Below are positions 18,678 through 51,156 of a stretch of DNA of 64,000 nt, one piece after another. Made by a program: the position numbers and the translations under genes. Position 1 is the stretch's first letter. Every line of letters begins with the position of its first letter. The DNA is from Azolla caroliniana (Eukaryota > Plantae > Polypodiophyta), in NCBI GenBank assembly GCA_043228905.1, contig JBHGNT010000001.1:12090001-12154000 (forward strand), given 5' to 3'. The notes beneath the pieces are model-generated. The model made no database searches. It was not told the DNA's origin and saw only the letters and a program-made list of their open reading frames with translations.

Positions 18678-21043
18678 ATGGATTGCTCTGTAGAAGCTCT
18701 TTCCACTCTCATTGGTTGTGGAGACGAGCGGGCCGCGCTACAACTCAAGTTCGTTGCGATCGCAACAATCTTGGTTGCATGTGTCCTCGGGGTCTCGATG
18801 CCGATATTGGGTCGCTTCCTCACCTTCTTCCACCCCCAATCCGACCTCTTCTTTGTAGTAAAGGCGTTTGCGGCAGGTGTCATCCTAGCTACCGCGTTTG
18901 TGCACATGCTTCCCACTTCATTTGAGGCGCTCGGCAATCCTTGCTTGGCACAAAACCCTTGGGGAAAATTTCCTTTTGCGGGGTTCGTCTCGATGGTAGC
19001 TACACTTTGCACACTTTGCATTGATTTTTGGGCTACCACATACTACGAGAAGAAGCATCTTGTGGTCATCCATGCTGGTCCTTCTACTTCTATTACCTCC
19101 ATATGTACTAGTGTGCAAGAGTTTCCTTATGATGATGATAATTATAATTCTAAAGGGAAAAGGCAAGAGATTTCGCATCATGGTAGTGTTAAGCCTATTG
19201 CACTAGACAATAAGGAGAAGCTTTCTCGTGATAGTATTAATATTGCGCTACGCACTAATGTAGTTAGTGGTCATCATGCATGTTGTAGTGTAGATAATAA
19301 AAGTAATGTCAATATTCGTGATGAGAATGATGCGTCCTTGTATAATGTTGAGCATGCCAAGCTGGATAATGTTGTCAAGAATGCGGATCCAATATATCCG
19401 ATTGATGATCATAGCCTCATCAATTCCGAACTTACCACAAATGTTATCGACTACCATTCACACGCAATCAATGACTCGCGTGTTGCCACCCAATCTCAAA
19501 TTCGACAACGAGTTATATCACAGGTACTATTTTTCGATTAGGTATCAATTGCCCTTTGTTTTCCATTTTTATTGGTACATGATCTCATAGCATATCGGTT
19601 AACTTCATCAACTCATGCATTGATAATTGTGAAAAACTATGTTGCGCGGTTTACATTCTATGTTAAGAAGCCATTGAAACCCTACAATGCCTCGATCAGA
19701 ACACATGAATGATGATGACAAAAAACAAAGCATCAATGAAATGTTTCATATGCATCCCCTTTTTCTTGATGCAAAATGAACTATAATGCCTTTATGAAAC
19801 AATTCATATATATTACCGAGTGAAAACCAACCTCGGTTTCTAAAGGGTTGATGACAAATAAGACATGGAAGTGGGAATCCTCCAAATATATCGTGGTCAA
19901 TTTTATTCTCGCCAAAAGTTTCCTTTTGCCAACCCCTTATTATTGTAGAATCGAAGTAGCATCATGTGCTTGCACTATTGATTTGATTTTTACTTTGTGT
20001 TTGATTGAAAAAATGTTGACCCTCTTCTCTAATATATTTACATAGAAATTAGCTCCAATGTTGTGATTAAAATATCATATTTTCAAAGTATAATAGTTCC
20101 AATTTCCAAATGTTATTTTATCAAGCATTAGCTTATTTTGATATGTTAGGTTTATAAGAACTACATTGTTAGTTAAACTATTTCCATAGTTAATGCGGTT
20201 AACATGCTATTTGATTTCTTTTCCTTTCATAGAGAGCAACTTAAGATCATACTCACCTAACATTGTGTGATAGGTTCTAGAGCTTGGAATAGTTTCTCAC
20301 TCAATCATCATTGGTATTTCCCTTGGTACCACAAAGAGCCCATGCATTGTGAGGCCGTTGCTAGCAGCACTCACCTTTCATCAGTTCTTTGAAGGTGTAG
20401 CACTTGGTGGATGCATAGCTCAGGTAAAAGCATGTCACCAATGTATATTATTAACATCCGCAAGAGACCATATACATTATATGGAACCTCTCTTAATTTT
20501 ATGACTTTGAAAATAGGAACAAATGTTGAGAGTTTATTTTGTGGTCTGCATATTCATGTGCATTTATTTTTCTAGCATGTATATATGTAGTGTACATTGT
20601 ATATTGCATGTATATGTATACCACATACATACATATGTATGTATGTATTTATATGTGCACACCAATAAGATGTGACTTGTCAAAGCCAACACATAGTTTT
20701 TGGAAAAAAAAGCCAACACATATATACACACACATATTTTTGTATATGTTCAAACATATATTAAAACAAAATGTATATGTGATACCTAAACATTAACATG
20801 TATATGTATGTATATGTGTGTGTGTGTGAGAGAGAGCAATTGGTAAGGTTGCCGTAGTGGTAGTAGTGTAAACAACTTACCACTAGAGTAAGCTAATTAG
20901 GATGAGAGAGAGAGAGAGAGAGCATAGTGGTAGTAGTGTAAACAACTTACCACTAGAGTAAGCTAATTAGGATGAGAGAGAGAGAGAGAGAGAGCATAGT
21001 GGTAGTAGTGTAAACAACTTACCACTAGAGTAAGCTAATTAGG

Positions 21044-27532: not shown

Positions 27533-28360
27533 GTTCCATATATGAAATAAAATAAATAATTGTCAATGGCCTAGTGGTTAGGGTCATTAAGTGTGTATAG
27601 AGTGGTGCAGAGTTTGAGACTTTGTTAACTAATAACGTGTATTAAAGAGTATTTTATTCCCCCTTTTTCTTTTGTTTGAGACAAGGGAATAATAAAAGCA
27701 TTGAATGCTAAAATAGGTGCCATACCCTCTTTTTCCTCTATAAAAAGGGGAGAAGAGGGCTTATTTCAGGGTCACCCATTTTGCCGTAGGAGGTGTACCA
27801 TTTAGGGTTGAGACTTTCTCTTTCTCTGTCTACGTCTATTTCTTCTTCTTGGTTTTAGGGTTCATGAGTTGTTTAGTTATTTTCTCATCTTCCTCTAATT
27901 GGGAGTTTAGGGTTTCATTCGCTTCTTTTCTCCCATCTTTGTCTTACTCGGAGAGGTTCAAGATTCCCTTCTTATTGTGAGAGTTATGAGCTTAGGGGTT
28001 GTGAGTTTGGTTTCTACTCTCTTCTTACTCAAGAGATTTTGGCTTTGGGTTTCTTAAACAAAGACTTCTTCAATTTTTGATGGCGGTCTACTTGGTGGCT
28101 CGGTTGTCTTCTCCACGATAGAGAATGTTACAGGTGTCGACGGTTTCGGGTTAAGGGTGGACTAACTCGATGGCTGGTTGTGGAAAGGAGGTTGTAGTGG
28201 CATGAGAGCTTCCTCAATTCAAGGCATTCACCAAATTATTTTAGCCCCCTTGTGTTGGTTTCTTTGTCGATTTATGTATACTGATTGATTGATTTGTACA
28301 AACCACTAAAATCGTGGTATTATGCCGATTCGTTGTAAGAAACCCCATTTTTTTGTATCA
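27533..28360 (+). repeat. Older interspersed repeat (probable LTR) into which the 23400-27532 element inserted; second copy at about 63110-63945
   Basis: Shared ordered motifs between 23345-23399 + 27533-28360 and 63115-63945: GTCATGATGTGG, CTAGTGGTTAG, GCATT.AATGCTA, CTATAAAAAG, GAGGGCTTATTTC, CCCATTTTTT. Confidence 0.6.
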
Positions 28361-28969
28361 TAACTTATGTTTATTTTCCCCATGATTTTTCCTTAATCTC
28401 GTGTTTAATCCCTTAACCAAGTGTTAAACTTCACACGGTTCATCATGCTGATCGTGTCCGAAACCCTAACTTCGTCGCCGAGCGCAAACACTCGACAAGC
28501 CCCAAAGCTCGACGAGCTCCTAAGCTTGATGAGCCTCTTACTCAGTGAGCGGCTACTCGATGAGAGAGAGAGATATAGATAGATTATAATTATCAACACG
28601 TTCGCGTTCACAAGTGGAAGGATTGTGCATTCCACTTGTAGAATCATCTTAAAACGAAGCAAATACACCCTCTCTACAAAAATTGGATGCACTAGTATCA
28701 CATGTTCCTCAACTTGATGAGAATTTGCAAATATAAAAATACATGATAGATCTACGAGTGGAGATCATTAGAAATCATGCAAGTTTAGACGCGTTGATAA
28801 GTTAATGTAGGCATAATAAAGTTCAACAATGGCTCAATATGTCACTACTGTGCGACAAGGGAAACACTAACTTAAAGACTTATATTAATTAGGTAAGTTT
28901 TACAAAAATATCAGGTGTACTTGTATCCATACTAATAAAATGAGTTATAATTTATACTTTGACCCATAC

Positions 28970-29250
28970 GTGCATGTATGTAATTGTGGAAAATGTAGGA
29001 TAGTGCACATTAGGATAAGTGATTGGAATAACTAACTTATTAAAGTATTCAATACTTGTATTTAAAGTTGATCTAATCTATTCCTCAGTTTGTTCATATG
29101 GGATCAAACCATATGTATATAATTGTGGACAATGTAAGGCAGTGAACTTTAGGATAATGTCGTGGAAATAACAAACCTATTAGGCTTTCATACCTGTATT
29201 TAAAATTGATCTACTCTATTGCTTAGGTGATTCACACAGGATCAAACTCC
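28970..29250. repeat. Degenerate tandem duplication (about 138-bp unit) in the left arm of the transposon
   Basis: Two copies of TGTAT.TAATTGTGGA.AATGTA...TAGGATAA...TGTATTTAAA.TTGATCTA...GGATCAAAC. Confidence 0.7.
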
Positions 29251-29640
29251 GAACGATAACGCAACTGGAACCATTATCAACACACTACACAATCTAAGCA
29301 GCAATGGAATAGAAACATAATAGTTTTAACAATAGAAGACAAAGATCCATAATAACAACATGGACAGTCATGGCAACAATTGTAGGGCCATGTTCTGTTA
29401 AGGTTAGCTTGGACCAAAATCAGCCTCAATTTAAACTAATTCATGTTTCTCCATAAATTTGGTAGTCAACTATGCACGCGGTGAAACCAATGTCATAAAT
29501 CTACTAACCAAGTATATAAAAATAAAATTGAAACATATAGAAGATTATAAAGAATAGAATCCACTAGGTAAAACCCAAAATTTGTATTAATAATGTGAAA
29601 TCCTAACAAATCGTCAGTGTCATTTTCTTCATAGAGTCTA

Positions 29641-30525
29641 TTACATAGCAATCAATTCATCAACGTCATTTTCTTCATCATCTTGTGTAGAACTCTCTTC
29701 GGCTATACGTGCATTGGCTTCCCCTGTTAGCCGAGCCAACGAAATATCTTCTATAAGCTCATCATCAAGCTCTATTAGCTCCCCCGGTTCGCCGGCTAAC
29801 GGAGGAATAGGCTCTCGCGAAGCAGGTTGAAACCTTTCTGTATTAGTGAGGTTCTTTGCACCGACCTCCTCATCCTGGTCTGGGCACTCCCACAAAGCCT
29901 TAATCCGCATATTAATAAATATAACCTGGTCCTGGTCCTTCTCCAATGCAATTGTATTTCTAAAGAGCTTCAATGCACATGCAGACGTCGTTCCTGTGAT
30001 GTAAGTAACAAGAAGATTTAGTTGTCAAACGAAAAAAAAAGGGATTGGTTATCTCAAGATCGTTACCCTAGTTCAAGGAATACCCGTGCCAGAAAAGAGA
30101 TCTAATATCCAGTCTCCTTTGATAGAAAACATCTCGATCAAGCGCATCATAAGTCGTTGAGGTTTTTGATATGGGTTGACAAGTCCCCGTTTTGTCGTGG
30201 TGACATGTCGCAATTTCCGTGTCACTGCTGGATATACCAACAGATTTGAACCTCCCACTTCATTAGAATGCTCCTTGATTCTCTGTTTCTTAACTTCATT
30301 GAAGTAGCCAACCGTGATGTATTCAATGGCATTAACGAACCGAAAAGTTGGCCCTCTATTTACATTGGTCTTGATCCTATAAAAAATAATACATCGAGTT
30401 AAGAATAGATTGAACAACCTTAAGAAATGCAATATAGTGAAAGACACCTATAAATAATCCTTACCATGCAAGGTTCTTGATGCCATGGCAACGAGATCTC
30501 AAAGCTTGAGCTACCGAGTACCCTT
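29641..30525 (-). pseudogene. 5'-truncated, spliced beta-class N4-cytosine/N6-adenine DNA methyltransferase (exons 30525-30465, 30376-30084, 29993-29641)
   Basis: Spliced translation: ...LAWIKTNVNRGPTFRFVNAIEYI...NPYQKPQRLMMRLIEMFSIKGDWILDLFSGTGTTSACALKLFRNTIALEKDQDQ...R. Two GT-AG introns (88 and 90 bp) join in frame through W-I-K and G-T-G-T-T. The catalytic (D/S)PP(Y/F) region is missing beyond the copia junction. Confidence 0.85.
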
Positions 30526-33500
30526 GGTCGGATCGACACTTTCGGCAAACTGCAGGTTATCCGGTAAGCAAAGCCCGAAGACAAAAGCAGAGAAGGCGGA
30601 TATGAGGAAAATTCCATATGCCTCTGCCGTCGGGAGCTTAATGTACGCAATGGTGTGTACCCGACCGGATATAGGATACGCAGTCGGAGTGGTGAGCCGG
30701 TTCATGAGCAATCCCGGCAAGGAGCACTGGAACGTAGTCAAATGGATACTCCGGTACTTGAAGGGCACTTCGAACATGTGTCTCCGATTCAACTTCAGAA
30801 AACCTCAACTTGACGGTTTTACCGATTCGGACATGTCGGCTGATGTGGATACCAGCCGGTCTACATCTGGGTATGTAATGACATATGCAGGGGGAGTTGT
30901 TTCGTGGCAGTCGAGGTTGCAGAAGACGGTTGCGTTGTCAACCATAGAGGCGGAGTACATGGCGGCTGTGGAAGCCGGCAAGGAAATCTTATGGATGAAG
31001 GACTTCATCGGAGAGCTCGGTATCCGGCAAGATGAATACCGGCTCTATTGCGACAGTCAAAGTCCCATCCACCTTGCTAAGAATGTGGCCTACCATTCCC
31101 GGACGAAGCATATCCAGCGCAGATATCACTGGATCCGGGAAAGAGTAGATGACCAGGAGTTCGCACTGACGAAGATCCACACGGCTGAGAACGGGTCAGA
31201 TATGCTGACCATAGTGCTGATACCCGACAAGCTAGATGCATGCCGAAAGAGGATCATTCTAGTAAGACACCCCATGCTGGAGTGAAGGGGGAGTTTGTTC
31301 GGAGACAGGTCCCTCCGGATGGTTGCCGGAAGTGTCGATCCGACCGGTTTCGCATCTGACATGTTGAACCGGTGAAGCACCTTTGTCACGTACTTCTCCT
31401 GTGACAACCATAATTGCTTCGCTGACCGGTTCCGGATAATATGCATCCCGTCTTTCATTGAGAAGGTCTGGTTGAGAGCCTTCTTCAGCATCCGTATTTT
31501 AACTTGGTCCCGTCCGACGATCAACATGTCGTCCACGTACAGAAGGAGTATCAGGAAGTCGCCTCCATCCGGACGGTGCTGAGTATATCGGTCATGAAGG
31601 AGTCGAACTTCCGGTACCATTGCCGGGGGGCCTGCTTTAACCCGTAGAGGCTCTTCTTCAACCGGCAAACCAGGTGCTCCTTCCCTTTCTCCACGAATCC
31701 TTCCGGTTGCTGCATGTAGATCTCTTCTTCGAGGTCACCGTGAAGGAATGCCGTCTTCACGTCTAACTACTCTACCTCGAGGTCCATGCTTGCCGCTATA
31801 CTCAGCACCGTCCGGATGGAGGTCATCTTTACTACCGGGGCAAATATCTTGTTGAAGTCCACGCCCTTCTTCTGCTGGAAACCCCTTCACCACGATCCTG
31901 GCTTTGTATCTCGGGGGGTTGCCGACATCTCCCGGTTTCAACTTGTACACCCACTTGTTTCGGAGTGCCCGCTTTCCTTTCGGCAACTCCACCAATTCGT
32001 ACGTATGGTTTTCATGCAGGGAATCCATCTCATCCTGCATGGCACTTAACCATTTTTGGCTGTGGGCGTCTTCCTTCGCTTCTTCGAAGCTTTCCGGCTC
32101 CCCCTCATCGGTCAGCAGAACATGATCTGCATCCGGAAATCTCCGGGGGGCCCTTCTCTCTCTGAGAGGATATCTCCGTCTCTGGGCTTCGGTGACCGGC
32201 TCATCCATCTGCTCTTCATTCGAATCCGATTCGGGGTCTTGGCCGGTTCCGGTTTCAGCTTCCTCTACTTCTTCTTCAGCCCGTTCGGTATCCTCACCGT
32301 AACCGGCTGGTCCCTCGAGTGCTAACCGGTCTCTTGCCGGTTGGGTCTGCTCATCGTAGAGTCGATCCTTACTGGTCGACTCAGAGTCCATTATCTTCTT
32401 CTCCGACTCCCAGACGGCGAGCGTCTTGTTCTCCAAGAAGATAATATCTCGACTTCGGAATACCTTCTTGTCGACTAGGTCCCACACTCGGTAGCCGAAC
32501 TCATCGTCACCATAACCGAGGAATATGCATGGCTGGGTCTTTGGATCTAACTTTCCTCTCCGGTCCTTAGCTACATGCACGTACGCGAGACACCCGAACA
32601 CCTTCAGATGCCGGTAGGATACTTCCTTACCGGTCCACACTCTCTGTGGCATGTCTCTGTCCAAGGGTACTGAGGGTGATCTATTTATCACATATGTCGC
32701 CGTCGACAGTGCCTCAGCCCAAAACTTCTTGGGTAGTTTTGCATGCGCTAGCATACTCCGGACCCTCTCCATTATGGTCCGGTTCATCCTCTCGGCCAGT
32801 CCGTTTAGTTCCAGCGTCTTCAGCACGGTAAATTTGAGCCGGATTCCCTTCGAGCGGCAACACTCCTTGAACTGCCCCCGGTATTCTCCTCCGTTATGTG
32901 CTCGAACTGCCTTCAGCTTCCGGCCGGTTTCTCTTTCCACTCTCGCATGGAGCTCTTTGAAGACAAATAACACCTGATCCTTCGTCTTCAACGGTGTGGC
33001 CCACAGCTTCCGGCTGTGGTCATCTATGAACGTCACGAAGTACTGTGATCCTGCATGTGATTTCGTGTCTACTTGACACACATCAGTATGCACCAACTCC
33101 AGTGGTGCATTACGTCTCATCGGTGGCCTTGGTCGGAAGGAGGTCTGGTTTTGCTTACCGGCCAGACAATTAGTGCACTTCTCCAAGTGCACGTTCTTCA
33201 CTGGAATGAGGTTGTCGTCTGCAAGCCTCTTCATCCCCTTCTCGCTCATATGACACAGCCTCTTGTGCCACAGCTCACCGGCAGTGTCGAATGCCACGTT
33301 CACTTCTTCCGGGCATAACCGGGCATTCATCAGGTACAATGTGTTTACCTTCCGGGCCCGAGCCACAATCAGGCTCCCTTTGCTAAACTTCATGACACCG
33401 TTCCGGATGCTACCTGTGTAGCCCTCATCATCTAGCCGACCGGCTGATATCAGGTTCAGTCGAACCTCCGGAACGTGTGAGACATCCCTCAACAGCAACT

Positions 33501-35211
33501 TGCATCCGGTTGGTGTCGACAGCCACACGTCTCCTATGCCGACAATTCGGCATGTACCTTCATTCCCCATCCGGACACAGCCGTGATCACCGGCTGAGTA
33601 GGATGAGAAGCATTTCCGGTCCGGGGTAAGGTGGATCGACGCTCAGGAGTCTACCACCCAGGTCATCTCGTCGCCGGCAAGGTTTATCTCACTCTCCTCG
33701 GTGATGAGCATCAACTCCTCTTCAGTTGCCGCGATTGTCGTCGTTCCCTTCCGGTTCGGTCCCCTCCGGTCTTTACCGTTCCGGTCCGGTGTCCGCTTCG
33801 AATCGGTGCCGTCGGTTACCTTGTCTTTACGGAAGTGCCGACAGTTCTTCTGGAAGTGTCCCGGCTTGCTGCAATAGAAGCAAGTAGGCCTCCCCCTTGA
33901 CTTTGACCGTGTCCCCAACTTCTCCCAGTTCTGGGGACTACGGTTTTTATGTCTTCCGCGTTCTGATTCGGTAAGGAGCGCTTTGGAGTCGGAGCTCGTA
34001 TCCTTATCTTTCCGACGCGCCTCCTCATCTAGCAGGCTCGACTTCACTCTTGTTAGGGATAACCGTTTTCCTTCCGGCCCGACGTTGCCCAAAGTGACAA
34101 CCAACGTCTCCCAGCTATCCGGGAGGGAACCGAGCAGGAGTAGCGCTAGTACTTTGTCGGCGAGAGGTACTTCCAATGATGTTTCCTGGTGTATCAGCCC
34201 CTGGAAGGCATTCATGTGCTCCGCCATGCTGGAGCCATCTTGGTACTGGAGTCTTACTAGCTTCCGGAATACCGAAACCTGATTAACAGCATTCTTGTTT
34301 TGAAACATTATGCCGATCTTCTCCCAGAGCTCATGAGCCTTGCTCTCTTCATTGAAGTTGTTGTACAGGCTCATGTCGATGAAGCAGTGTATGTACGCCG
34401 TTGTCTTCATGTGCATCACCTCCCATATCGCGGCGTCGATTTTGTCCGGTCTCTTGTCTCCGAACTGAACCGGCAGCCAGAGGTCTTTAACCACGAGCAT
34501 GTCCCTCATCTTCGACTTCCACACCGAATAGTTGGAGCCGGTGAGCTTGAACATGTCTCCCAACGAATAGTCCATTTTCTGTGTCGTTTTGCTCTGATAC
34601 CACTTCACAGGAACTAAACGCTCCCCTATACGCAACGCTCGGCCACAACCAAGCTTAGATTCATACACAGAAAAACGGGCAATTAAAGCACGACACAAAG
34701 AGGAGAAGAGTACACGGGATGTTTACGTGGAAAACCCAAGGAGGGAAAAACCACGGCAGCCCACAGGCTACAAACTATCACTATGCTAGAATGTACAATA
34801 GTGAGTTCACGGAGGCCATGACATCGTGCTCACGATCCTCGCCACAGGCGGCGGTTACAACAGAGGCAATGACCTCTTGCTCTCTCTCTCTCTTTGTACA
34901 CTGTTACGCACTCACTCTATTCTTTCCCCAACAAGAATAACAACAACGATCAATCATCAAAACACACTCAAAAAAGGTTTGCCCTAAGTCATATTTATAC
35001 TAATATGACTTTTCGGCTATTTATAAATATAGCCACGATGGACTCTCAGAAACATATTTACAAATATGTCTCTTCATCTGGAGAGCACTTCTCACTGGGT
35101 CTGCACCATCCGGTTCTCTGTAGCCAGGTCTGCGCCATCCGGCTCTTCGTAGCCGGGTACTCCTCATACGGTTCTTCTCCCTTCCCATCCGGAGGGACCT
35201 GTCTCCCAACA
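30526..35211 (-). mobile_element. Rearranged Ty1/copia element 2 (5' LTR 34605-35211, PBS 34591-34602, gag-pol on the minus strand; 3' segment 30526-31322 inverted)
   Basis: Same family as element 1. RT end, RNaseH, PPT and the first about 25 bp of the 3' LTR lie on the plus strand (30526-31322), while the rest is on the minus strand. No TSD. Confidence 0.93.
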
Positions 35212-35286
35212 ATATCTTTTCCACACAATAATTAATTGTTGCCCCAAAAACACAATTTTTCTCTTTCAGAGCCTTCTTTTATATAG

Positions 35287-35873
35287 GAACTCGATACGGC
35301 GTATCGAGTTCTGGTTTAAAGTCTAGGTTTTAAACACAAACTCGATACACCGTATCGAGTTCCTGTGATTTCTTTGCTTTTTAAACAGGAACTCGATATG
35401 GCGTATCGAGTTCCTGTTTAAAACCTACACTTTAAACACGAACTCGATACGCCGTATCGAGTTCGTGTTTAAAACCTAAACTTTAAACGAGAACTCGATA
35501 CGGCGTATCGAGTTCCTGTTTAAAAAGCAAAGGAAACACAAGAACTCGATACGGTGTATCGAGTTCCCGTTTAAAGTTTAGGTTTTAAACAGGAACTCGA
35601 TACGCCATATCGAGTTCCTGTTTAAAAAGCAAAAAAAAAAAAGAACTCGATACGGCGTATCAAGTTCCCATTTAAAGTTTAGGTTTAGGTTTAGGGACCT
35701 CGATATGGCGTATCGAGTTCTTGTTTAAAGTTTAGGTTTTAAACAGTAACTCGATACGCCGTATCGAGTTCCTGTTTAAAAAGAAAAAAATATATATGAA
35801 CTCGATACGCCATATCGAGTTCCTATATAAAGTTTGTATTGTATACAGGAACTCGATACGGCGTATCGAGTTC
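35287..35873. repeat. Array of 12 palindromic 25-bp repeats GAACTCGATAC-NNN-GTATCGAGTTC at a 51-bp period
   Basis: Starts at 35287, 35338, 35389, 35440, 35491, 35542, 35593, 35643, 35696, 35747, 35798 and 35849. Spacers are AT-rich and 25-28 bp long. Confidence 0.97.
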
Positions 35874-35899
35874 TTGAGCGAAAAAACATATTTACAAAA

Positions 35900-38747
35900 A
35901 TGTCCATAGTGTCAGAGGCCTACCTGGAGTCCTCGCGCTCGATTCTCTTTGAAGACATGGTTGATCGTGTGGTAGTGGAGGCGGAGATCGCGCTTTTGTG
36001 CTTTGTGTTGACCGTTCTCGATTGAAGAATATTGTTTGTCATCAGACTCATCGTTTTCTACTAAAGAGTATTGTTTGTCGACAGAGTCACCATATTCGAT
36101 TGAAGAATATTGTCTGTCGACAGACTCACCATAGTCTATCGAAGAATATTGTCTGAGCTCATCTACAGGGAATGTAAATAATGACACATGTGAAGAGTTC
36201 TCTATTGAAGAATACGATATTAATAAAGATACGAAGAATGAAGGTAGTGCCAAGGAAACATTGAATAACATTGGCGATGGTCACAATAGAGAATTAGATT
36301 GTAACAAGGTTACACCAACCTCTATGCAGGAAGAGAAATCTGGGAGCCCTATGCATATTAGAAGAATCCCATGAAGAATTCATTTGGCTAGATTTAGCTT
36401 GGTGACATCAGATAAACAGATTGGATTTGATGTCAAAAAAATTGGAAAATCAAAGTTGCGAGAATTAAGGCGATACTATTTTTCGATGACCGGTGATGAG
36501 CAAGACACTTACCTCAGGTCACTTATGCAACTAGTATCTGACAAATGTACGGGGATCAAAGTATCATTCGAGTATTATATCTTCCATGTGCAACAGATAT
36601 GTAGAGTTGCATTCAAAATTGCGTTATGTGTTAGTAACATGCGGCTACATAGAGTACAACAACGTCTACTTAGCAGGGATCAGATGCTCAATTGTAAAGA
36701 GGTTCCAAGTATGAAAGGTGCAATTGGAAGACATGCTATTGGTTGGATGAAAACTTACTTTCAGTTAAATTGTGAAGTAATGCCCACTACAGGTAGGATG
36801 CACCTTTCTGATAATTATACACGTCGGGAAGTTTATGATGTCTATCGATCTGATATGCTGGGCTCACGTAATAAGTCTATCACCTATATCCAATTCACAA
36901 GATTATGGAGAGCTCGGTTTTCAAATGTTATTATTCCTCGTAAAGTACGTATGGGGTATTGCTCCATTTGTGCAAATCTTAAAAGTTTGGGTAAAGGTGC
37001 AAAGACATCAATGGAAAAGGATATGAGTAAGAAGTTACTACAAGAGCATCGTGAGGCACAATCCTTAGAACGAAAGAAGGCGATGCATCATAGAGAGAAG
37101 TGTTTGAAGAGGCCCGAACAATACATGTGCTTAATGATAGATGGCATGGACCAGAAGAAGACATGCTTGCCGCATATGCGAAGGCTCCCCAAAGATGTCA
37201 ATGATGAGTGCCTTGTTCAAATGCACTTGGTGGGATGCTTGGCTTATAATAGGTTTGTTCGACCTCACGTCTTCATTACTTACCCCAATGTTCACAATGA
37301 CCCTAACCTAACAGTTACAGTCATTCACCGAGTTTTGATGTCTTGGGGCCAACATTTCCCCCCTGTTCTATACATTCAATTGGACAATACTGCTAGAGAG
37401 AACAAAAATTCAACTGTATTTGGCTATTTAAGTATGTTGGTCAACCAAGAATTGTTTAGGAAAGTGAAAGTCAATTTCCTTTTGGTTGGCCACACACATT
37501 ACCATATAGATCAGATGTTTAGCACATTCTCCAGACAATTGTCTCGGCATGATGCTTTCACTTTACCTAAACTATTTGATGTCATTTGTGATGCACATAC
37601 ACCACGCCCAAAAGTGTTACACTTGAAGGAGGTATATGACTTTAAGAGATATATATCAGATGGGGGTGGTGGGAATGTTAAAGTGCTTGCTCAGTTAAAC
37701 AATATAAGTTTCAATCACATTTTTATGATAAAGAAAAATTGAATAAGTGGTTCTACACTTTTGTATGCTAAACAATATTCATATTCTACAACATGGGAAC
37801 CTGAAGGTGGTTGCTAGTTATTACTTTGTATGCCGAGTACAATTGACCATGGAGCTAAGCAAATGCCAATTGAGAAGAAAGGACAGTTGCAGAGCGACTT
37901 TGTATCAGAACAAAAACGGTCATGGCTCCAAGCCTTTGAAGAAAAAAGAAAGCATATTGAGGCCGCCAAGAAATATGCCGCACAACAAGACACGTCATGG
38001 TGAGATGTATTTTATAGTGATCAGAAAGAAATTATAGACAATTGTGTATCTGTTGATAATTGGAATTTGGAAACGTCATTCACATGGTCGCTGCAACATG
38101 ATCGCGTAAATAGAACTCCGGAGCAACTAGTAAATGCGATTAATGACAGCTTAGTCCATCCACAACAAAGAGACATTTATGTGGGACCAAGGATGACCAA
38201 AGCAGCCGAAGCTAGATGGCAAGGCAATTTGCAAGAGCTCACCGCGGGGATGTTGATTGCAACGTCGGCTGATGAGAACTCACATGGCCACCAATTTTGG
38301 GTTGGTAAAATTCTAGAAGTGCTAATGCATGAAATAGAAAACACGATCAAGTCTATAAATGTTCATTGGTACAACACTAGAAGTGCAAATGCTTTTACAG
38401 GTAAGTATACATTGGAGATGATTGAATGCCCAACAAGAAGGGGAGGTAGGAAGAGGAAGCGAAACATTCGTAACACCTCGACCCTTGATATCTCTGATGT
38501 GGATATTATCGTGTACGACTTCACACTTACAAAAGCCGGATGATTAAGGAAGTCAACAATAGATATAATAAAAGAAAAATTACCAGGTCTACAAGGTGGC
38601 TCGAGTCAAAGGCAAACGAGATCTGCTACATATAATCTAGAGTCAAACCATTTGGTTTATGACGAAGATAATGCACTGATTGGTACATCCGAGGATGATG
38701 AGGAGGAATCGTCATTGTATATTAGTTATAGTAGTGATTCTCCGTAA
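35900..38747 (+). pseudogene. Sola-like (DUF7869-type) DDE transposase with premature stops and frameshifts; core ORF 36384-37742
   Basis: CSIC..H zinc-binding motif, IDGMDQKK, YIQLDNTARENKN and FLLVGHTHYHIDQMFS, all inside TIRs. Family assignment is from recalled motifs, not a search. Confidence 0.82.
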
Positions 38748-39299
38748 AGGAGTGATCATGAATGTATATTTGGCTATTAAGTGTAACTACATTCCGCTTG
38801 TAACAAATCGAATAATATAAAAGCATGTGTTTTGAATTCTTATGATTTCTAAAAAATCGTTTCTTATAAAATAACATTGGTTGTAAAGTTTGTGATATAA
38901 ATTGAGAATGTATCTTTTTGAAATTCATCTTTTTTTAGTTACTTCTAAATCACGAAAATAGTGGATTTTTAACCTTTTTCATAGCATGTTTGAACATGTA
39001 TGATAGTGGTATCAATGTGTTTTGTAAAATCATTGAAAAAGCCCTAAAATTTCCCTTATCCTTCCATTTATGCGCGATCCTTCCACTTGTGAACGCGAAC
39101 GTGTTTATCTTCTTCGAAGGTCAAATATGACCTATGAGACCAAAAATATTACATTTCACGTGATACATGTGAAAGTGAGTAATGACTCTCGATGTTCAAG
39201 AACTTTACCGATAACTTTGGCATTGCAATTGAGAAATAATAACCTGCAATTGACTTTGGATATCCAAAAGCTCCTCATCTAACGGTGCATGTATTAATA

Positions 39300-43009: not shown

Positions 43010-43825
43010 TGATGCAGATTGGTGTTGAAAGATGTGTGACACGTTCCGGAGGTCAAATTGAATATGATATCAGTCGGTCGACTAGATGATGAAGGTTGCA
43101 TGGGTAGCTTCCGGAATGGCACTCTAAAATTCTGCACAGGAAACCTGATCGTGGTCCGAGCCTAGAAGACAAACACATTACACTTAATGCATGCTCGACT
43201 ATTCCGGGAGGAAGTGAATGTGGCAGCTGGCACAGCCAGTGAGTTGTGGCACAAGAGGCTATGCCACATGAGTGAGACGGGGATGCAGAAGCTTGTCGAG
43301 GATAACATCATTCCGGAGGTGAAGAATGTGCAACTTGACAAGTGCATCGATTGTTTAACCGGCAAGCAAAACAAAACGTCTTTCCGATCCAGACCCCCAA
43401 TGAGAAAGAAGGCATCGCTGGAACTCGTGTGTACGGATGTATGCTACGTGGACACTGAGTCACATGCTGTTTCAGGAGATATATATGCAACAACCAGAAG
43501 GATTCGTCGAAAAGGGGAAGGAGAACTTGGTATGTTGGTTGAGGAAGAGCCTTTATGGATTGAGGCGGCCTCCCCGGCAATGGTACCGGAAGTTCAAATC
43601 CTTGTTTGTGAAGAAGTTCGACGGAGGAGACTTTCTCGTCCTCCTATTGTATGTGGACAACATGCTGATAGTCGGACGAGACCATATGAAAATCTAAATG
43701 CTAAAAAAGGCCTTAAGCAAGTCTTTCTCAACGAAGGATATGGGTCCAACAAGACAGATCCTAGGAATGCACATTGTCCGGGACCGAACAAAGAAATTAT
43801 TGTGGTTGTCACAGGAGAAGTACGT

Positions 43826-44683
43826 TGTCACGCAAATCCGCGGCTTGTGGGTCAGCTCGGGCGGGACCTCCGGGGTCTAGGACCAGGGAGCCTAAGGACG
43901 CGCAGTTACTAAGCTTGCAGTGGCCTATCTGGCCTGGTTACCAAAGGCCGGATACTAAGCTCATGGGTTTGCAGAACCGTATTTAATCCGGCACTGCTAC
44001 CAGATTCTGGATGTTGCGCACACAGGCTCGCAAGATTGAGTAGGAAAGCACAGAATAGAGAAGGGAAGAACAATACCTTCCAGCACCCCAGAAAAGTTAT
44101 GAATAATGAAGCAACTTAGAGAAAGACAAACAAACACCTCAGAGAAAGAGCACTCGGATGCAACAATGCTAAAATAATCGATTAAAACATAGAAGAATAC
44201 AAGGATGGCCTCAAGCCGGAAAACAGAGCTTGGTGCGCACACACACACACAGGTGAGCCTCTGGTTGGGAGCACACAGGCTTCGTATGCGAGCAGAGGCC
44301 TCACGCCACCGATCTGAACAAGAAGAATAGAAACCCCTGTAGTGCTCGAGATCACAATTCGGTAGCACCTTACCCTCAAAACCACCTCCCCATCTAATAG
44401 ACACCTTCCCTCTCTTTTATATCACCAAAGACAGGGAGGGTCGAGATTACATCAAGTTGTTAACACAACCTTACTGTTAGAGATTCCCCCAACGATTTTC
44501 TACCCTCAAATCTTATTATTCAGTGGGCCCTTGAGTACCTTTTAACTAAGTTGTCTTGTACTTTTAATACTTCGATATTTACATTTGTTTGATCATTAGA
44601 CCAAGTTCATGTGCATATATGCACACCCTTGTTCATACACTTTCGATGGGCCCTTTCCCTTGTGGCTGGAATCCTCCACAACA
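43826..44683. mobile_element. Solo LTR inserted in the RT region of the older copia
   Basis: TGTCACG...CAACA interrupts GAGAAGTACGTGACAAAGG (EKYVTK). Flanking ACGT/ATGT duplication. Confidence 0.75.
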
Positions 44684-45805
44684 ATGTGACAAAGGTGCTC
44701 CAAAGATTCAACATGTAGAATGCGAAGCCGGTTGGCTCGACACTGCCGACTAACAGCAAGCTAATCGGAAGACAATGTCCGAAAATAAAGACGGAGAAGG
44801 CTGAGATGATCAAGGTTTCCTATGCCTCAGCAATCGGAAGCCTAATGTATGCAATGGTATGTACCAAGCCGGACGTCAGATACGCGGTTGGAGTCGTCAA
44901 CTGATTCATGAGCAATCCGGGCAGAGAGCATTGGGTTGCAGTCAAGTGGATACTCCGGTACCTAAGAAGCACCTTGAGTGTGTGCCTCCGATTCAGTTCA
45001 AGTAACCCTTTTGTTAGAAGGTTTTCTGATTCAGACATGTCGGTTGATGTGGATACTAGCCGGTCCACATTCGGATATGTCATGACTTATGCATGGGGAG
45101 CCGTCTCATGGCTATCGAGGCTGCAAAAGGCCATGGCGTGGTCAACCATGGAAGTGGAGTATATGGTTGTAGTGGAAGTCGGCAAGGAAATAATTTGGAT
45201 GAAGGAGTTCATTGGAGAGTTGGAAATTCGGCAAGGGGAATTCCGACTCTACTGTGACAACCAAAGTGCCATCCACCTTGTGAAGAATGCAGCCTCCCAC
45301 TCGAGGACCAGGAATATACCGAGGAGATATCATTGGCTCCGAGAGAGGGTAGAAGAGACGGATTTTGCTCTGATGAAGATCCACACGGAGGAGAATGGAT
45401 CAGGCATGCTAACAAAGGTGCTAACAGTAGAGAAGCTGGACGCATGCAGGAAACGAGTCAATTTGATGAAGGACCCCATTCTGGAGTGAAGGGGGAGTTT
45501 GTTAGGAAATAGATCCCTCCGCATGGGAAGTAAGCATGAACCAGATTGGAGTCTGGAGAAGAAACCGGATACGGAGCCGGACCGACCGGAAGGCATCCGG
45601 TAGAATCCAGAGAGGTATCAAGAAGTGAACATATTTGTAAATATGTTTTGGCACTCCTAAGACAAGTTATATTTGTAAATTTCCCATACAATGTATAAGT
45701 ATAAATATACTTAGGTCTAATTTGTAATGTGTGATGACAGACTAAGTGTAGGAGTGAGCGAAGATAGTGTGACATTATCATAGTTGTTGTTGGTTGGTGC
45801 CTCTG

Positions 45806-48800
45806 TGTTGGGATTACGGTCCCTTCGGATGGGATGGTCGGATATCGGAGATGAATGCCGACAAGCCCGGTTTCGGTTTCGGATCCGGATGACGAAGACC
45901 CCGGCTTCGGTGCCGGATGACGAATGTACCCGGAGAGCAATCCGGATGCAGGGACATATCCGTGAATATGTTCGTTATGGGCCCCTGAGGCTATAGTTGT
46001 AAATAGCCCTAAAGTCATATATGTATAAATATGACTTAGGGCAAATAGTTTTGGTGTTGCTTCTCATTTTTCTGTTTTTCCACTTTAGAGGAGTGAAGAG
46101 AGAGCAGCCGTGAGAGAGAGAAAGAGAGAGAGCGCGAGAGAGAAAGAGGTAGACGCCTCTGTGTATTTCCGCCGCCTGTGGCGAGGACAGCGAGCTCAAG
46201 GTCGTCGCCTTGGAGCTCGTCATTGTATACTTCTCTGTATAGTGTTGTTTGGAGTCTTGTACTCCCGTGGTTTTTCCCCGTTTAGGGTTTTCCACGTTAA
46301 TCCTTGTGTACTCGCGTTTCTTCGTTTTGTTTCTACGTGTGTTTCCTATTTTCTGCTCCATTGATCCGCGATTAATCGGTTGTGGCCGAGATAAGAAGGT
46401 GGAGAGAAGCGTCAATTCTCAACAAACTGGTATCAGAGCGACTGTTGCAGAAAATGGAAGGCGGCGGCAGCGGGCAGCCGATGATGATGGTGCTGAATGC
46501 ACAGAATTACGCCGACTGGAAGATCAAGATGGAGGATCTTCTGATTGTTCGGGACCTGTACGAACCGATTGACAGGTCGGAAATACCGAAGGGGGTACTT
46601 GAGTCGGAGTGGAAGCTCCTGAACCGGAAAGCCGTAGCGACGATCCGACAATATGTCGACGTAAGCGTCCTGCAACATGTGGCGAACGACACCAACGCAT
46701 ACGAGATGTGGAAGAAGCTGTCTGGCCTCTATGAGAGGAAGAATGCGTTGAACCGGACCTCCCTGATGAGGAAGATAGTGAACCTCAAGTACCGGGACGG
46801 CGAGAGTATGGTAGAACACGTAAGCACGTTCATGGGATTCGTGAATCAGCTTGCGGCGATCAAGTTCCCGCTGGAGGATGCAATGCAAGCCATCATCCTG
46901 ATGTGTACATTGCCGGACAGCTGGGAGAACTTGGTGGTGACTCTCAGCACCTCCTGCACCGAAGATAACTTGTCCCTACAAACGGTAAAGACAAGTATTC
47001 TGAATGAAGAAGCGCGTCGGAGAGATAAGGAACCGGCCTCCGACCCGAAGATGCTGCTTACCGAATCGGAACGGGGAAGACACTGGAACCGGAGTCCGCA
47101 AAGACGGGAGAAGTCGGGGACCCGGTCGCAGTCAAGAGGAAGGCCCACGTGCTTCCACTGTGGGAAGCCGGGGCACTTCCGGAAGAATTGTCGGCATTAC
47201 CGAAAGGACAACGGAGCCGACGACACCGATTCGAAGAAGTCACCGGAGAGAAACGGTGCATATCGGGGAGCCACGGACCGGAGAGGTTCGGATCGGCGAG
47301 GGCAGGACCGGAAAGGAACGACGGCACTCGCGGCAAGTGAAGAAGAAATCATGCTCATTACCGAAGAGAGGGAGCTGAACCTTGCCGGCGTAGAGATGAC
47401 CTGGGTGGTCGATTCCGGAGCGTCGTTCCACCTGACCCCGGAGAAGAAATACTTCTCATCCTACACAGCCGGTGAGCATGGCTGTGTTCGGATGGGAAAT
47501 GAAGGTACGTGCCGGATTGCCGGCATAGGAGACGTGTGGTTGACAACCCCGACCGGATGCAAAATGCTGCTGAAGGATGTCCGACACGTTCCGGAGGTTC
47601 GACTGAACCTGATTTCGGCCGGGAGGCTAGACGATGAAGGCTACACAGGTAGCATCCGGAACGGTGTCATGAAGTTCAGCAAAGGGAGCTTGATAGTGGC
47701 TCGGGCCCGGAAGGTCAACACACTGTACCTGATGAATGCCTGGTTATGTCCGGAAGAGCTGAATGTGGCAGCCGACACTGCCGGTGAGCTGTGGCACAAA
47801 AGACTGTGCCACATGAGTGAGAAGGGGATGAAGAGGCTTGCAGAAGACAACCTTATTCCAGTGAAGCATGTGCACCTGGAGAAGTGCACCGACTGCCTGG
47901 CCGGTAAGCAAAACCGAACCTCCTTCCACTCAAGGCCACCGACGAGACGTAGCGCACCATTGGAGTTGGTGCACACTGATGTGTGTCAGGTAGAAACGAA
48001 GTCACATGGCGGAGCCCAGTACTTCGTGACATTCATTGATGATCACAGCCGGAAGCTGTGGACGGCACCGTTGAAGACAAAGGACCAAGTGTTGTCCGTC
48101 TTCAAAGAACTCCACGCGAGAGTGGAAAGGGAATCCGGCAAGAAGCTGAAAGCGATACGAGCGGATAACGGAGGGGAATACCGGGGGCAGTTCCAGGAGT
48201 ACTGTCGCTCGAAGGGAATCCGACTCGAGTTTACTGTGCCGAAGACGCCGGAACTGAACGGGCTGGCCGAGAGGATGAACCGGACCATAATGGAGAGGGT
48301 CCGGAGTATGCTGGCGCATGCGAAATTACCCAAGGGGTTTCGGGCTGAGGCAATGTCGACGGCGACATATGTGATAAACAGATCACCCTCAGTTCCTTTG
48401 GACGGAGACACGCCGCAGAGAGTGTGGACCGGTAAGGAAGTGTCCTACCGGCATCTGAAGGTGTTCGGGTGTCTCGCATACGTGCATGTGGCAAAGGACC
48501 GGAGAGGAAAGCTAGATCCTAAGACCCGGCCATGCATATTCCTCGGTTACGGCGACGACGAGTTCGGCTACCGAGTATGGGACCCGGTCGACAAGAAGAT
48601 ATTCAGGAGTCGAGACATCATCTTCATGGAGGACAAGACACTCGCCGACTGGGAGTCGGAGAAGAAGATGAAGAGCTCCAAGTCGATCGGTGAGGATCAA
48701 CTCTACGAGGAGCAGTCCCGACCGGCAAGGGACCGGTTAACACTCGAGGATCCGGCCGAAGACGGTGAAGAAACAGAACCGGCCGAAGAAGATGAAAACG

Positions 48801-51156
48801 ATACCGGAACCGGCCCCGATCCCGAAATGGATTCGGATGAAGAAGAATCGGAAGAACCAGTTACCGAAGCTCCGGAACGGAGATATCCTCTAAGAGAGAG
48901 AAGGGCCCCCCGGAGATTTCCGGAACCAGAGCACGTGCTGCTAACCGACGAAGGGGAGCCGGAGAGCTTTGAAGAAGCAAAGCATGACACCCAGAGCCGC
49001 AGGTGGTTGAGTGCCATGCAGGACGAGATGGATTCCCTGCATGAGAACCACACATATGAACTTGTGGAGTTGCCGAAAGGAAAACGGGCACTCCGTAACA
49101 AGTGGGTGTTCAAGCTGAAACCGGGAGATGCCGGAAACCCCCCGAGATACAAAGCCAGGATCGTGGTGAAGGGGTTTCAGCAGAAGAAGGTCGTCGACTT
49201 CGACGAGATATTTGCCCCGGTAGTGAAGATGACCTCCATCCGGACGGTGCTGAGCATAGCGGCAAGCATGGACCTCGAGGTAGAACAGATGGACGTGAAG
49301 ACGGCATTCCTTCACGGTGACCTCGAAGAAGAGATCTACATGCAGCAACCGGAAGGATTCGAGAAGAAAGGGAAGGAGCACCTGGTATGCCGGTTGAAGA
49401 AGAGCCTTTACGGACTGAAGCAGGCTCCCCGGCAATGGTACCGGAAGTTCGACTCCTTCATGACCGACGAAGGGTACCTCAAAACGCAGTCCGACCACTG
49501 CGTGTTTGTGAAGAAGTTCGAAGGAGGAGACTCCCTAATACTCCTCCTGTACGTGGACGACATGTTGATCGTCGGACGGGACCAGGTCAAGATACGGATG
49601 CTGAAGAAGGCTCTTCACCGAACCTTCTCAATGAAGGACCTGGGTCCGGCGAGGCAAATACTAGGGATGCACATCATCCGGGACCGGAGCAAGAAGCAGT
49701 TGTGGCTGTCACAAGAGAAGTACGTGACAAAGGTGCTTCAACGGTTCAACATGTCGGAAGCAAGACCGGTCGGATCAACCCTACCGGCAAACTGCAAGTT
49801 GTCCAGCAAGCAAAGTCCCAAGACAAAGGCTGAAAAGGAGGATATGATGAAAGTGCCGTATGCCTCAGCTGTCGGGAGCTTGATGTACGCCATGGTGTGT
49901 ACGAGACCGAACATCGGATATGCAGTCGGAGTGGTGAGCCGGTACATGAGCAATCCCGGCAAAGAGCATTGGAACGCGGCCAAGTGGATACTCCGATACC
50001 TGAAGGGCACGGCAAACGTGTGCCTCCGATTCGGCTCCGGTAAGCCCGAACTCGACGGCTTCACCGATTCGGATATGTCGGCTGATGCAGATACCAGCCG
50101 GTCCACATCAGGGTATGTGATGACGTTTGCAGGGGGAGCTGTTTCGTGGCAGTCGAGGCTGCAGAAAACGGTTGCGTTGTCAACCACGGAGGCGGAGTAC
50201 ATGGCAGCTGTTGAAGCCGGCAAGGAAATAATATGGATGAAGGACTTCATTAGAGAGCTCGGTATCCGGCAAGAGGAGTACCGACTCTACTGCGACAGTC
50301 AGAGTGCCATCCACCTTGCGAAGAACGCAGCCTATCACTCCCGGACGAAGCACATCCAGCGAAGATATCACTGGATCCGGGAAAGGATAGAAGACAAGGA
50401 GTTCGTGCTGACGAAGATCCACACCGACGAGAACGGGTCGGATATGCTGACCAAGGTCCTCACACCCGACAAGCTGGAAGCATGCCGGAAGAGGGTCGGA
50501 TTGGAGAGACATCCCATGCCGAAGTGAAGGGGGAGTTTGTTGGGATTACGGTCCCTTCGGATGGGATGGTCGGATATCGGAGATGAATGCCGACAAGCCC
50601 GGTTTCGGTTTCGGATCCGGATGACGAAGACCCCGGCTTCGGTGCCGGATGACGAATGTACCCGGAGAGCAATCCGGATGCAGGGACATATCCGTGAATA
50701 TGTTCGTTATGGGCCCCTGAGGCTATAGTTGTAAATAGCCCTAAAGTCATATATGTATAAATATGACTTAGGGCAAATAGTTTTGGTGTTGCTTCTCATT
50801 TTTCTGTTTTTCCACTTTAGAGGAGTGAAGAGAGAGCAGCCGTGAGAGAGAGAAAGAGAGAGAGCGCGAGAGAGAAAGAGGTAGACGCCTCTGTGTATTT
50901 CCGCCGCCTGTGGCGAGGACAGCGAGCTCAAGGTCGTCGCCTTGGAGCTCGTCATTGTATACTTCTCTGTATAGTGTTGTTTGGAGTCTTGTACTCCCGT
51001 GGTTTTTCCCCGTTTAGGGTTTTCCACGTTAATCCTTGTGTACTCGCGTTTCTTCGTTTTGTTTCTACGTGTGTTTCCTATTTTCTGCTCCATTGATCCG
51101 CGATTAATCGGTTGTGGCCGAGATAAGAAGGTGGAGAGAAGCGTCAATTCTCAACA
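45806..51156 (+). mobile_element. Young full-length Ty1/copia LTR retrotransposon (LTRs 45806-46424 and 50538-51156, 619 bp each)
   Basis: LTRs appear identical by eye. TSD CTCTG (45801-45805 / 51157-51161). PBS TGGTATCAGAGC (tRNA-iMet) at 46428-46439. PPT just before 50538. Confidence 0.98.
46454..50527 (+). CDS. Copia gag-pol polyprotein (1357 aa): gag, zinc knuckle, protease, integrase, RT, RNaseH
   Basis: Single open frame from the first ATG after the PBS, with all copia motifs in order. Confidence 0.96.
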   Translation: MEGGGSGQPMMMVLNAQNYADWKIKMEDLLIVRDLYEPIDRSEIPKGVLESEWKLLNRKAVATIRQYVDVSVLQHVANDTNAYEMWKKLSGLYERKNALNRTSLMRKIVNLKYRDGESMVEHVSTFMGFVNQLAAIKFPLEDAMQAIILMCTLPDSWENLVVTLSTSCTEDNLSLQTVKTSILNEEARRRDKEPASDPKMLLTESERGRHWNRSPQRREKSGTRSQSRGRPTCFHCGKPGHFRKNCRHYRKDNGADDTDSKKSPERNGAYRGATDRRGSDRRGQDRKGTTALAASEEEIMLITEERELNLAGVEMTWVVDSGASFHLTPEKKYFSSYTAGEHGCVRMGNEGTCRIAGIGDVWLTTPTGCKMLLKDVRHVPEVRLNLISAGRLDDEGYTGSIRNGVMKFSKGSLIVARARKVNTLYLMNAWLCPEELNVAADTAGELWHKRLCHMSEKGMKRLAEDNLIPVKHVHLEKCTDCLAGKQNRTSFHSRPPTRRSAPLELVHTDVCQVETKSHGGAQYFVTFIDDHSRKLWTAPLKTKDQVLSVFKELHARVERESGKKLKAIRADNGGEYRGQFQEYCRSKGIRLEFTVPKTPELNGLAERMNRTIMERVRSMLAHAKLPKGFRAEAMSTATYVINRSPSVPLDGDTPQRVWTGKEVSYRHLKVFGCLAYVHVAKDRRGKLDPKTRPCIFLGYGDDEFGYRVWDPVDKKIFRSRDIIFMEDKTLADWESEKKMKSSKSIGEDQLYEEQSRPARDRLTLEDPAEDGEETEPAEEDENDTGTGPDPEMDSDEEESEEPVTEAPERRYPLRERRAPRRFPEPEHVLLTDEGEPESFEEAKHDTQSRRWLSAMQDEMDSLHENHTYELVELPKGKRALRNKWVFKLKPGDAGNPPRYKARIVVKGFQQKKVVDFDEIFAPVVKMTSIRTVLSIAASMDLEVEQMDVKTAFLHGDLEEEIYMQQPEGFEKKGKEHLVCRLKKSLYGLKQAPRQWYRKFDSFMTDEGYLKTQSDHCVFVKKFEGGDSLILLLYVDDMLIVGRDQVKIRMLKKALHRTFSMKDLGPARQILGMHIIRDRSKKQLWLSQEKYVTKVLQRFNMSEARPVGSTLPANCKLSSKQSPKTKAEKEDMMKVPYASAVGSLMYAMVCTRPNIGYAVGVVSRYMSNPGKEHWNAAKWILRYLKGTANVCLRFGSGKPELDGFTDSDMSADADTSRSTSGYVMTFAGGAVSWQSRLQKTVALSTTEAEYMAAVEAGKEIIWMKDFIRELGIRQEEYRLYCDSQSAIHLAKNAAYHSRTKHIQRRYHWIRERIEDKEFVLTKIHTDENGSDMLTKVLTPDKLEACRKRVGLERHPMPK

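Follow-up and report, generated by a model that had tools for sequence, protein, structure and literature searches.

An inactive copy of a probable Sola1-like transposon in Azolla caroliniana, and the amino-methyltransferase gene and palindrome array of its family

DNA amino-methyltransferases of the beta class are mainly prokaryotic, and the eukaryotic cases of bdelloid N4CMT and Marchantia DN4MT1 are host genes. A predicted enzyme of the N4-cytosine/N6-adenine (N4C/N6A) type is also carried by a transposon of Ectocarpus, Sola1-1_Ec32. Its report (Genome Biol 2025, PMC12477816) describes an opposite-strand gene for a protein with an N-terminal ParB-like domain and the predicted methyltransferase, and suggests both binding and modification of its own transposon. 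The locus analysed here lies in a 64-kb window of Azolla caroliniana contig JBHGNT010000001.1; the window is the whole stretch of DNA analysed, and all coordinates are window positions. It is very probably an old, inactive copy of a high-copy, Sola1-like element bounded by terminal inverted repeats (TIRs), the intact members of which carry a transposase gene, a divergent methyltransferase gene and a palindrome array between the two. That the three parts travel together in one TIR-bounded element is supported at the level of the family. The locus is an ordinary land-plant example of a design already published for algae.

The present, Sola1-like family and Sola1-1_Ec32, a Sola1-type transposon, compared by description, both have an accessory methyltransferase gene opposite the transposase, and the N-terminal domain of the Ectocarpus protein is described as ParB-like (PMC12477816). 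Sola1-1_Ec32 is 21.5 kb long, belongs to a brown alga and encodes a protein of 1104 amino acids, and a palindrome array is unmentioned in the cited passage. The present family, in contrast, is approximately 9 kb long, occurs in land plants, in which its copy number is very high, and contains a phased array. Another close system is PAG3 of the Plavaka elements of Bostrychia moritziana and Chondrus, in which a ParB-like N-terminal domain is encoded beside tandem inverted-repeat arrays; its authors propose self-binding and self-modification (bioRxiv 10.1101/2025.02.11.637652). PAG3 shares with the present family an accessory gene that adjoins inverted-repeat arrays. It differs in its superfamily (Plavaka/CACTA-like) and in its effector, which is a 2-oxoglutarate-dependent oxygenase, and the N6-adenine methylase sits on a separate protein, PAG2. 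An earlier sequence-only reading of the window had considered the architecture possibly undescribed. This is not congruent with the literature, in which the same pairing is published for Ectocarpus and ParB-linked arrays are published for red-algal Plavaka elements. No paper was found in the literature on land-plant members of the family.

Iyer and colleagues trace the eukaryotic ParB-linked amino-methyltransferases to phage ParB-terminase loci. The bacterial and phage beta-class enzymes M.RsrI, CcrM and M.MboIIA have the same motif order as the present family, motif IV and then motif I, and their HPTQKP and FxGSG motifs resemble NPYQKP and FSGTG. The best solved matches of the methyltransferase are M.RsrI, M.MboIIA and CcrM, and the best NCBIfam match is CcrM. 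The distant matches include bacterial fusions of ParB_N, HTH_ParB and methyltransferase domains (P0164). The present family differs from the bacterial and phage enzymes in its spliceosomal introns, in a motif IV that reads DIPY rather than DPPY, and in an N-terminal domain that has no match to the ParB_N or HTH_ParB profiles.

Among eukaryotic genes, bdelloid N4CMT and Marchantia DN4MT1 share with the family a prokaryotic amino-methyltransferase ancestry. DN4MT1 is a host gene of the N4C type with the motif TSPPY and is expressed in sperm, whereas the present gene has the Asp-first motif DIPY and is borne on a transposon. A link to DN4MT1 was considered and rejected, as TSPPY differs from DIPY. 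No close relationship to either gene was found.

The dead Azolla copy is itself of little weight, and it is the family that deserves attention. In the family, strong purifying selection has maintained a bacterial-type amino-methyltransferase gene within a land-plant transposon of very high abundance, and a palindrome array travels along with it. Self-marking by transposons is so far a proposal from algae. Ferns, Ginkgo and liverworts are tractable hosts for the question of whether, and to what end, transposons write their own N6-methyladenine (6mA) or N4-methylcytosine (4mC), given Marchantia and Riccia genetics and long-read methylation calls.

Recurrence of the element and conservation of its parts

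By direct reading, the TIRs are 36 nt long (28595–28630 and 39105–39070) and identical at 34 of the 36 positions. Their perfect 28-nt core occurs at exactly two sites in the window, 28596–28623 on the plus strand and 39104–39077 on the minus strand, with a chance expectation of 0. Both mismatches are a T in the left arm, in place of the C of a CpG that is present in the right arm and in four relatives; at position 28626 the majority letter in the reads is C. Identical copies of a target-site duplication (TSD), TATC, flank the TIRs at 28591–28594 and 39106–39109. These results confirm two features given by the sequence-only reading, namely 36-bp TIRs with CpG-to-TpG mismatches (by repeat search, direct reading and relatives) and a TATC TSD at both ends (by direct reading).

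The relatives compared are L001 (Riccia sorocarpa CM100797), L002, L004 (a Logan contig), L005, and L007–L012 (several ENA assemblies), of which L007–L012 were obtained with the motif IV exon as query. Exact palindrome and TIR patterns have zero exact matches in the loci of the relatives, and approximate matching was used instead. With one to four mismatches per 36 nt, the TIR terminates the contigs or elements L007, L008, L011 and L012. In four relatives the homology stops at the identical terminal base and is followed by differing 4-mers. Four independent contigs contain the same TIR approximately 1 kb downstream of an intact methyltransferase gene, followed by a different flank or by the end of the contig. 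In L002, no TIR was found within seven mismatches, and the transposase-side end of this element is not seen.

Read depth places the element among highly repeated sequences. The contigs aligned over 28300–30800 come from four DNA runs, which represent two organisms, and the DNA runs that contain the left arm come from 14 studies. Summed depth in run X1 is approximately 16–165 before the element and approximately 158,000 in the bin with the TIR (28552–28635), a step of approximately 10,000-fold. The same step is present in the three other runs. Depth then stays between 30,000 and 140,000 across the methyltransferase exons.

The full gene of the relatives consists of five open exons of 538, 73, 146, 134 and 117 codons as called, all of which are open in L008, L009 and L010. 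The length of the intact accessory gene is about 930–950 codons. Its arrangement relative to the other parts recurs. In L002, the N-terminal-domain exon, ten palindromes with a phase of approximately 41 bp and the transposase are arranged head to head, and the transposase is 59–67% identical to that of the Azolla copy. In the more distant L004, the transposase is head to head with open reading frames (ORFs) for the N-terminal domain, motif IV and the methyltransferase. In L008 and L010, arrays lie upstream of the first exon and have the same palindrome arms as the Azolla array with a different centre. The Ginkgo gene model Gb_37443 and its paralogues encode the same two-part protein. Palindrome sequence differs across lineages, yet the arrays still sit by the 5' end of the gene.

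The Riccia sorocarpa locus (L001) has two palindrome arrays on the flanks of an N-terminal-domain homologue, approximately 8 kb from a DUF7869 transposase. These arrays, at 470–750 and 2500–2790 of that locus, have a different palindrome with the core CCATGA..TCATGG and GACGTC ends. No methyltransferase exon was detected near the L001 arrays, and the Riccia element may therefore be a variant of the family without the methyltransferase.

The methyltransferase exons were searched singly, and proportions of nonsynonymous (pN) and synonymous (pS) differences (Nei-Gojobori) were summed over exon-wise codon alignments with L005. For exon D, pN is 0.057 and pS is 0.77. Over all retained exons (231 codons), pN is 0.116 and pS is 0.754, the latter saturated, and the DNA is 71% identical, although exon D reaches 90% identity at the protein level. 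This pattern indicates that the methyltransferase gene is kept functional by strong purifying selection over a long divergence.

If the methyltransferase were part of a gene of the host or of a bacterium, captured once in the manner of Pack-type elements, and the array an unrelated local tandem repeat, a fragmentary gene with no second copy in the 64-kb window would be unsurprising, and both are observed here. The repeat depth of the methyltransferase exons, which equals that of the TIR in four runs, does not agree with such an origin. Nor do the recurrence of the gene-to-TIR arrangement in four other contigs, the arrays beside the gene in L002, L008, L010 and L001, and the strong purifying selection on the gene. 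A one-off capture is extremely improbable. The two outcomes that the sequence-only reading had named as refuting, family members without methyltransferase and array or a TIR pair that does not recur, are both contradicted by these results.

Structure of the Azolla copy

The features of the copy are as follows, with strand in brackets where one applies.

28591–28594: left copy of the TSD, TATC, by direct reading.
28595–28630 (+): left TIR, 36 nt, by repeat search, depth step and the ends of relatives.
28631–29640 (−): left arm, non-coding, from the TIR to the methyltransferase stop codon; collinear with approximately 1 kb in L008, L011 and L012.
29641–29993 (−): exon E, the last exon, with its stop codon at 29641–29643; matches exon E of L005 and L008, with an identical C-terminal ELIAM.
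29994–30083 (−): intron 2, GT..AG; nucleotide identity with L005 drops inside it and the frame is restored across it.
30084–30376 (−): exon D, with NPYQKP and FSGTG; Pfam N6_N4_Mtase.
30377–30464 (−): intron 1, GT..AG; donor after a split Trp codon, at the same position in L005 and L008.
30465–30529 (−): remnant of exon C, 21 codons; homology to relatives ends at 30529.
30530–31322 (+): inverted copia fragment with the end of pol, the polypurine tract and the initial 27 nt of the long terminal repeat (LTR); from ORF 30485–31285 and comparison of the LTR start with the 5' LTR end at 35213.
31323–35213 (−): copia body with 5' LTR, gag, protease, integrase and reverse transcriptase, without its own 3' end; from Pfam and the LTR terminus.
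35214–35286 (−): residual 73 nt upstream of the methyltransferase gene, between copia and array; in L008 and L010 the array is approximately 300–400 nt upstream of the first long exon.
35287–35873: array of 12 palindromes, by repeat search; related arrays are in the same position in L002, L008, L010 and Riccia L001.
35990–38747 (+): transposase pseudogene in one frame, with its natural stop at 38745, a DUF7869 core at approximately 37194–37736 and a barrel-like C-terminal module at 38067–38540; from Pfam and tblastn.
38748–39069 (+): right arm, non-coding, by direct reading.
39070–39105 (−): right TIR, 36 nt, by repeat search and relatives.
39106–39109: right copy of the TSD, TATC, by direct reading.

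The methyltransferase gene is a 3' remnant that keeps only its last approximately 230 codons. A minus-strand exon at 30076–30375 matches N6_N4_Mtase (Pfam PF01555) with an E-value of 6.9e-9 and 36.4 bits, above the cut-off of 26.7. Exon D contains NPYQKP followed by the S-adenosylmethionine (AdoMet) motif I, FSGTG, as in beta-class enzymes. Its protein is 90% identical to P0092, and the exon region aligns to residues 210–284 of M.RsrI through the Ginkgo protein P0116. Both GT..AG introns, at 30377–30464 and 29994–30083, are conserved in position in L005 and L008. The exon with catalytic motif IV and the entire N-terminal part are absent. On three independent grounds the break lies at 30529. 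Homology to L005 and L007–L012 ends there in both blastn and tblastn comparisons, as does nucleotide homology to six related contigs. Reads from other copies continue past 30529 into sequence that encodes the WRIVVFHSM of the relatives. In tblastn searches with the N-terminal and motif IV parts of six relatives, nothing was found beyond 30529 anywhere in the window. The spliced, minus-strand N4C/N6A-type methyltransferase of the sequence-only reading therefore stands in its exons, its GT..AG introns and its Pfam match, but is reduced here to a 3' remnant without motif IV.

In the left arm (28631–29640), the repeat level by read depth is as high as in the TIR. The arm contains a tandem duplication of approximately 139 bp at 28974–29247, with units 81–84% identical (repeat families D3 and D4). 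In some contigs that derive from other copies, one unit is missing, with joints at 28966–29110.

The break is adjoined by a nested copia element. Its identity is confirmed by Pfam matches to RVT_2, rve, gag_pre-integrs and SH3_retrovirus (ORF 31738–33570). Its sole true LTR terminus is at 35213 (TG..CA). At the left junction, an internal site of pol shares the microhomology GGTC (30526–30529) with the methyltransferase exon, and the loose end of the reads before 30526 runs on into copia sequence. The GGTC that is common to both junction partners marks an illegitimate repair junction. Comparison with L008 indicates that approximately 2.6 kb of host-element sequence is absent between the array and 30529. 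The figure of about 5.8 kb that was given for the element after removal of the nested copia is thus the size of a deleted element: the copia is not a clean insertion, and the 2.6 kb of host sequence is gone. In the sequence of events proposed here, a copia element would have landed in the accessory gene, and a later microhomology-mediated rearrangement would have removed the missing segment, which holds the N-terminal domain and the motif IV exon. Within 30530–31350, the inverted fragment has in common with the end of the copia body approximately 30 nt, which encode VGSTL in both but contain differences; a simple inversion of the 3' end of the copia is therefore rejected. A copia RVT_2 fragment is likewise present in another copy of the family (L007:1742–2191, on ENA ERZ1034413 contig), within the accessory-gene exon that encodes the N-terminal domain.

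The array consists of 12 palindromes with a 25-nt core (35287–35873) at a start-to-start distance of 51 bp, with one gap of 50 and one of 53. Its chance expectation is 0, and the 12-unit hairpin array that was reported for the divergent intergenic region is confirmed. The 26-nt spacers belong to two alternating, related types, and the spacer ends extend each palindrome to approximately 43 nt. The observed/expected ratio of CpG is 2.13 in the array and approximately 0.7 (depleted) in the arms and the transposase. Variants within the array are mostly CpG-to-TpG/CpA changes. A repeat–spacer array resembling clustered regularly interspaced short palindromic repeats (CRISPR) was considered and rejected, as the spacers are of two alternating types and similar arrays recur within related elements.

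The transposase of this copy is a point-mutated pseudogene. The plus-strand ORF 36384–37739 matches DUF7869 with an E-value of 2.7e-49, and a single tblastn segment covers 647 amino acids at 59% identity to the L002 transposase; there is therefore no frameshift. Six in-frame stops interrupt the frame, at 36132, 36372, 37740, 37815, 38001 and 38541, and arose by point mutation. Candidate acidic residues are in IDGMDQ, QLDNT and HYHIDQ. TSDs of 4 bp and DN..(Q/E)NKN...GHT motifs are typical of Sola-type transposases. The transposase is best described as Sola1-like, a provisional class set by its motifs and by the parallel with Sola1-1_Ec32. Of the plus-strand DDE transposase in the sequence-only reading, the strand and the domain are borne out by the DUF7869 match, and an uninterrupted frame is not. 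The same holds for the proposed three-part mobile system, which is sustained at the family level and not in this copy; with six stops, and with motif IV and the N-terminal half of the accessory protein missing, this copy cannot act.

The C-terminal module of the transposase (38067–38540, plus strand) is kept in 13 relatives. Its structure model, with a predicted local distance difference test (pLDDT) score of 69.9, is an SH3-like beta-barrel. The best solved matches of the barrel are DNMT1 BAH1, the BAH domains of Orc1, EBS and AIPP3, Spindlin and Tudor-knot (Z 5.4–7.2), with a Foldseek probability of up to 1.0 but E-values above 0.03. These matches are suggestive only, and the barrel may be a chromatin reader domain.

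Predicted function of intact members

In the 113 family fragments that contain motif IV, DIPY is present in 81 and NIPY in 11, and the remaining 21 have other variants, many of which are probably from decaying copies. DIPY retains the Asp, the second Pro and the aromatic residue of the canonical motif. Motifs of the form x-I/L-P-Y are functional in N6-adenine methyltransferases of the Erm/KsgA type, and enzymes with Asp as the first residue of the motif are typically of the N6-adenine and not of the N4-cytosine type. Amino-methyltransferase activity of the intact members is plausible from these motifs, and adenine N6 is a likelier predicted target than cytosine because motif IV is Asp-first.

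In the N-terminal domain, Atlas features include ParB_N clusters (0.92) and DUF3723 (0.95). In a Foldseek search with a poor model of the domain, the top five rows are ParB, Noc and KorB proteins, with non-significant E-values of 0.16–0.43. ParB-like is used here as a literature-based label for this domain; it is not reproduced by the profile or structure searches of this analysis.

In intact members, the accessory protein would dock on the palindromes beside its own gene and would methylate the DNA of the element. Spacings of 51 and 41 bp are approximately five and four helical turns, and the sites would share one face of the helix, which would favour cooperative loading. The resulting mark would tune transcription of the two divergent genes or transposition. 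A more far-reaching and rather doubtful reading is that intact members are a self-targeting epigenetic module, in which the N-terminal domain docks on the palindromes, the DIPY methyltransferase writes 6mA (or 4mC) and the transposase barrel, which resembles BAH/Tudor domains, reads the state of chromatin. If this is true, the module, with its thousands of copies in each genome, could contribute greatly, and so far unrecognised, to non-5-methylcytosine (non-5mC) DNA methylation in ferns, Ginkgo and liverworts, and could act as a switch for transposition or in anti-silencing. Evasion of host 5mC silencing, which had been suggested as a role of such a mark, has no support in this copy: CpG transitions account for both mismatches of the TIR and for most variants in the array, as in a 5mC-methylated, decaying element.

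Several observations weigh against the main reading of the locus and its family. Motif IV is non-canonical relative to (D/N/S)PP(Y/F/W), with DIPY in the family, DIPH in Ginkgo and DLPR in L004. The N-terminal domain of the relatives has no ParB match in Pfam, PHROGs, NCBIfam or PDB profile searches, and hhalign of this domain with a bacterial ParB-methyltransferase gave nothing. Its AlphaFold model, from a six-sequence alignment, is poor (pLDDT 56.8), and VIA-align comparisons with ParB-family chains give Z of 2.5 or lower. The TSD is observed in this copy alone, each relative contig showing one end. Among the listed runs that contain the stretch, none is recorded as RNA.

The same departures of motif IV (DIPY, Ginkgo DIPH and L004 DLPR), together with the weakness of the Pfam match to the N-terminal half of the catalytic domain, would also suit a methyltransferase-like protein that is conserved but inactive. 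Such a protein would be a DNA-binding or scaffold partner of the transposase, the palindromes would be its sites or those of the transposase, and no new mark would be written. This alternative is unlikely, although it deserves consideration. In 81 of the 113 fragments, motif IV still has its Asp, its second Pro and its aromatic residue, AdoMet motif I and NPYQKP are strongly conserved, and the x-I/L-P-Y form is compatible with catalysis in the Erm/KsgA-type enzymes. The other alternative concerns the array, whose main role could be that of a bidirectional promoter or enhancer, or that of an internal region bound by the transposase, and not that of a docking site for the accessory protein. It lies exactly between the two divergent genes, its phases of 51 and 41 bp are near whole helical turns and suit any cooperative DNA binder, and the ParB-like fold is not confirmed here. 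In Riccia L001, however, the N-terminal-domain gene has an array on either side, approximately 8 kb from the transposase, which indicates that arrays follow the N-terminal-domain gene and not the transposase. Palindrome sequence also varies between lineages while the geometry is kept, and the ParB-domain accessory genes of Plavaka offer a published parallel (bioRxiv 10.1101/2025.02.11.637652). A promoter, enhancer or transposase-binding region as the main role of the array is on balance improbable, if a serious competitor to docking by the accessory protein.

Other features of the window

Outside the element, an uninterrupted ORF of 672 codons at 9001–11016 (plus strand) contains Cyt-b5 and fatty-acid desaturase domains of the front-end desaturase type and is apparently an intronless host gene. 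The ORF at 18678–19538 (plus strand) has a ZIP zinc-transporter domain and is probably an exon of a host gene. Further copia-type retrotransposons lie at 100–2921 (minus strand) and 43187–50524 (plus strand). In the latter, a gag-pol frame of 1381 codons is open at 46382–50524, and this copia may be young. A segment at 53072–53205 shares 135 nt at 77% identity with the 3' arm of a related contig (L009:4363–4497) and is probably a dispersed repeat.

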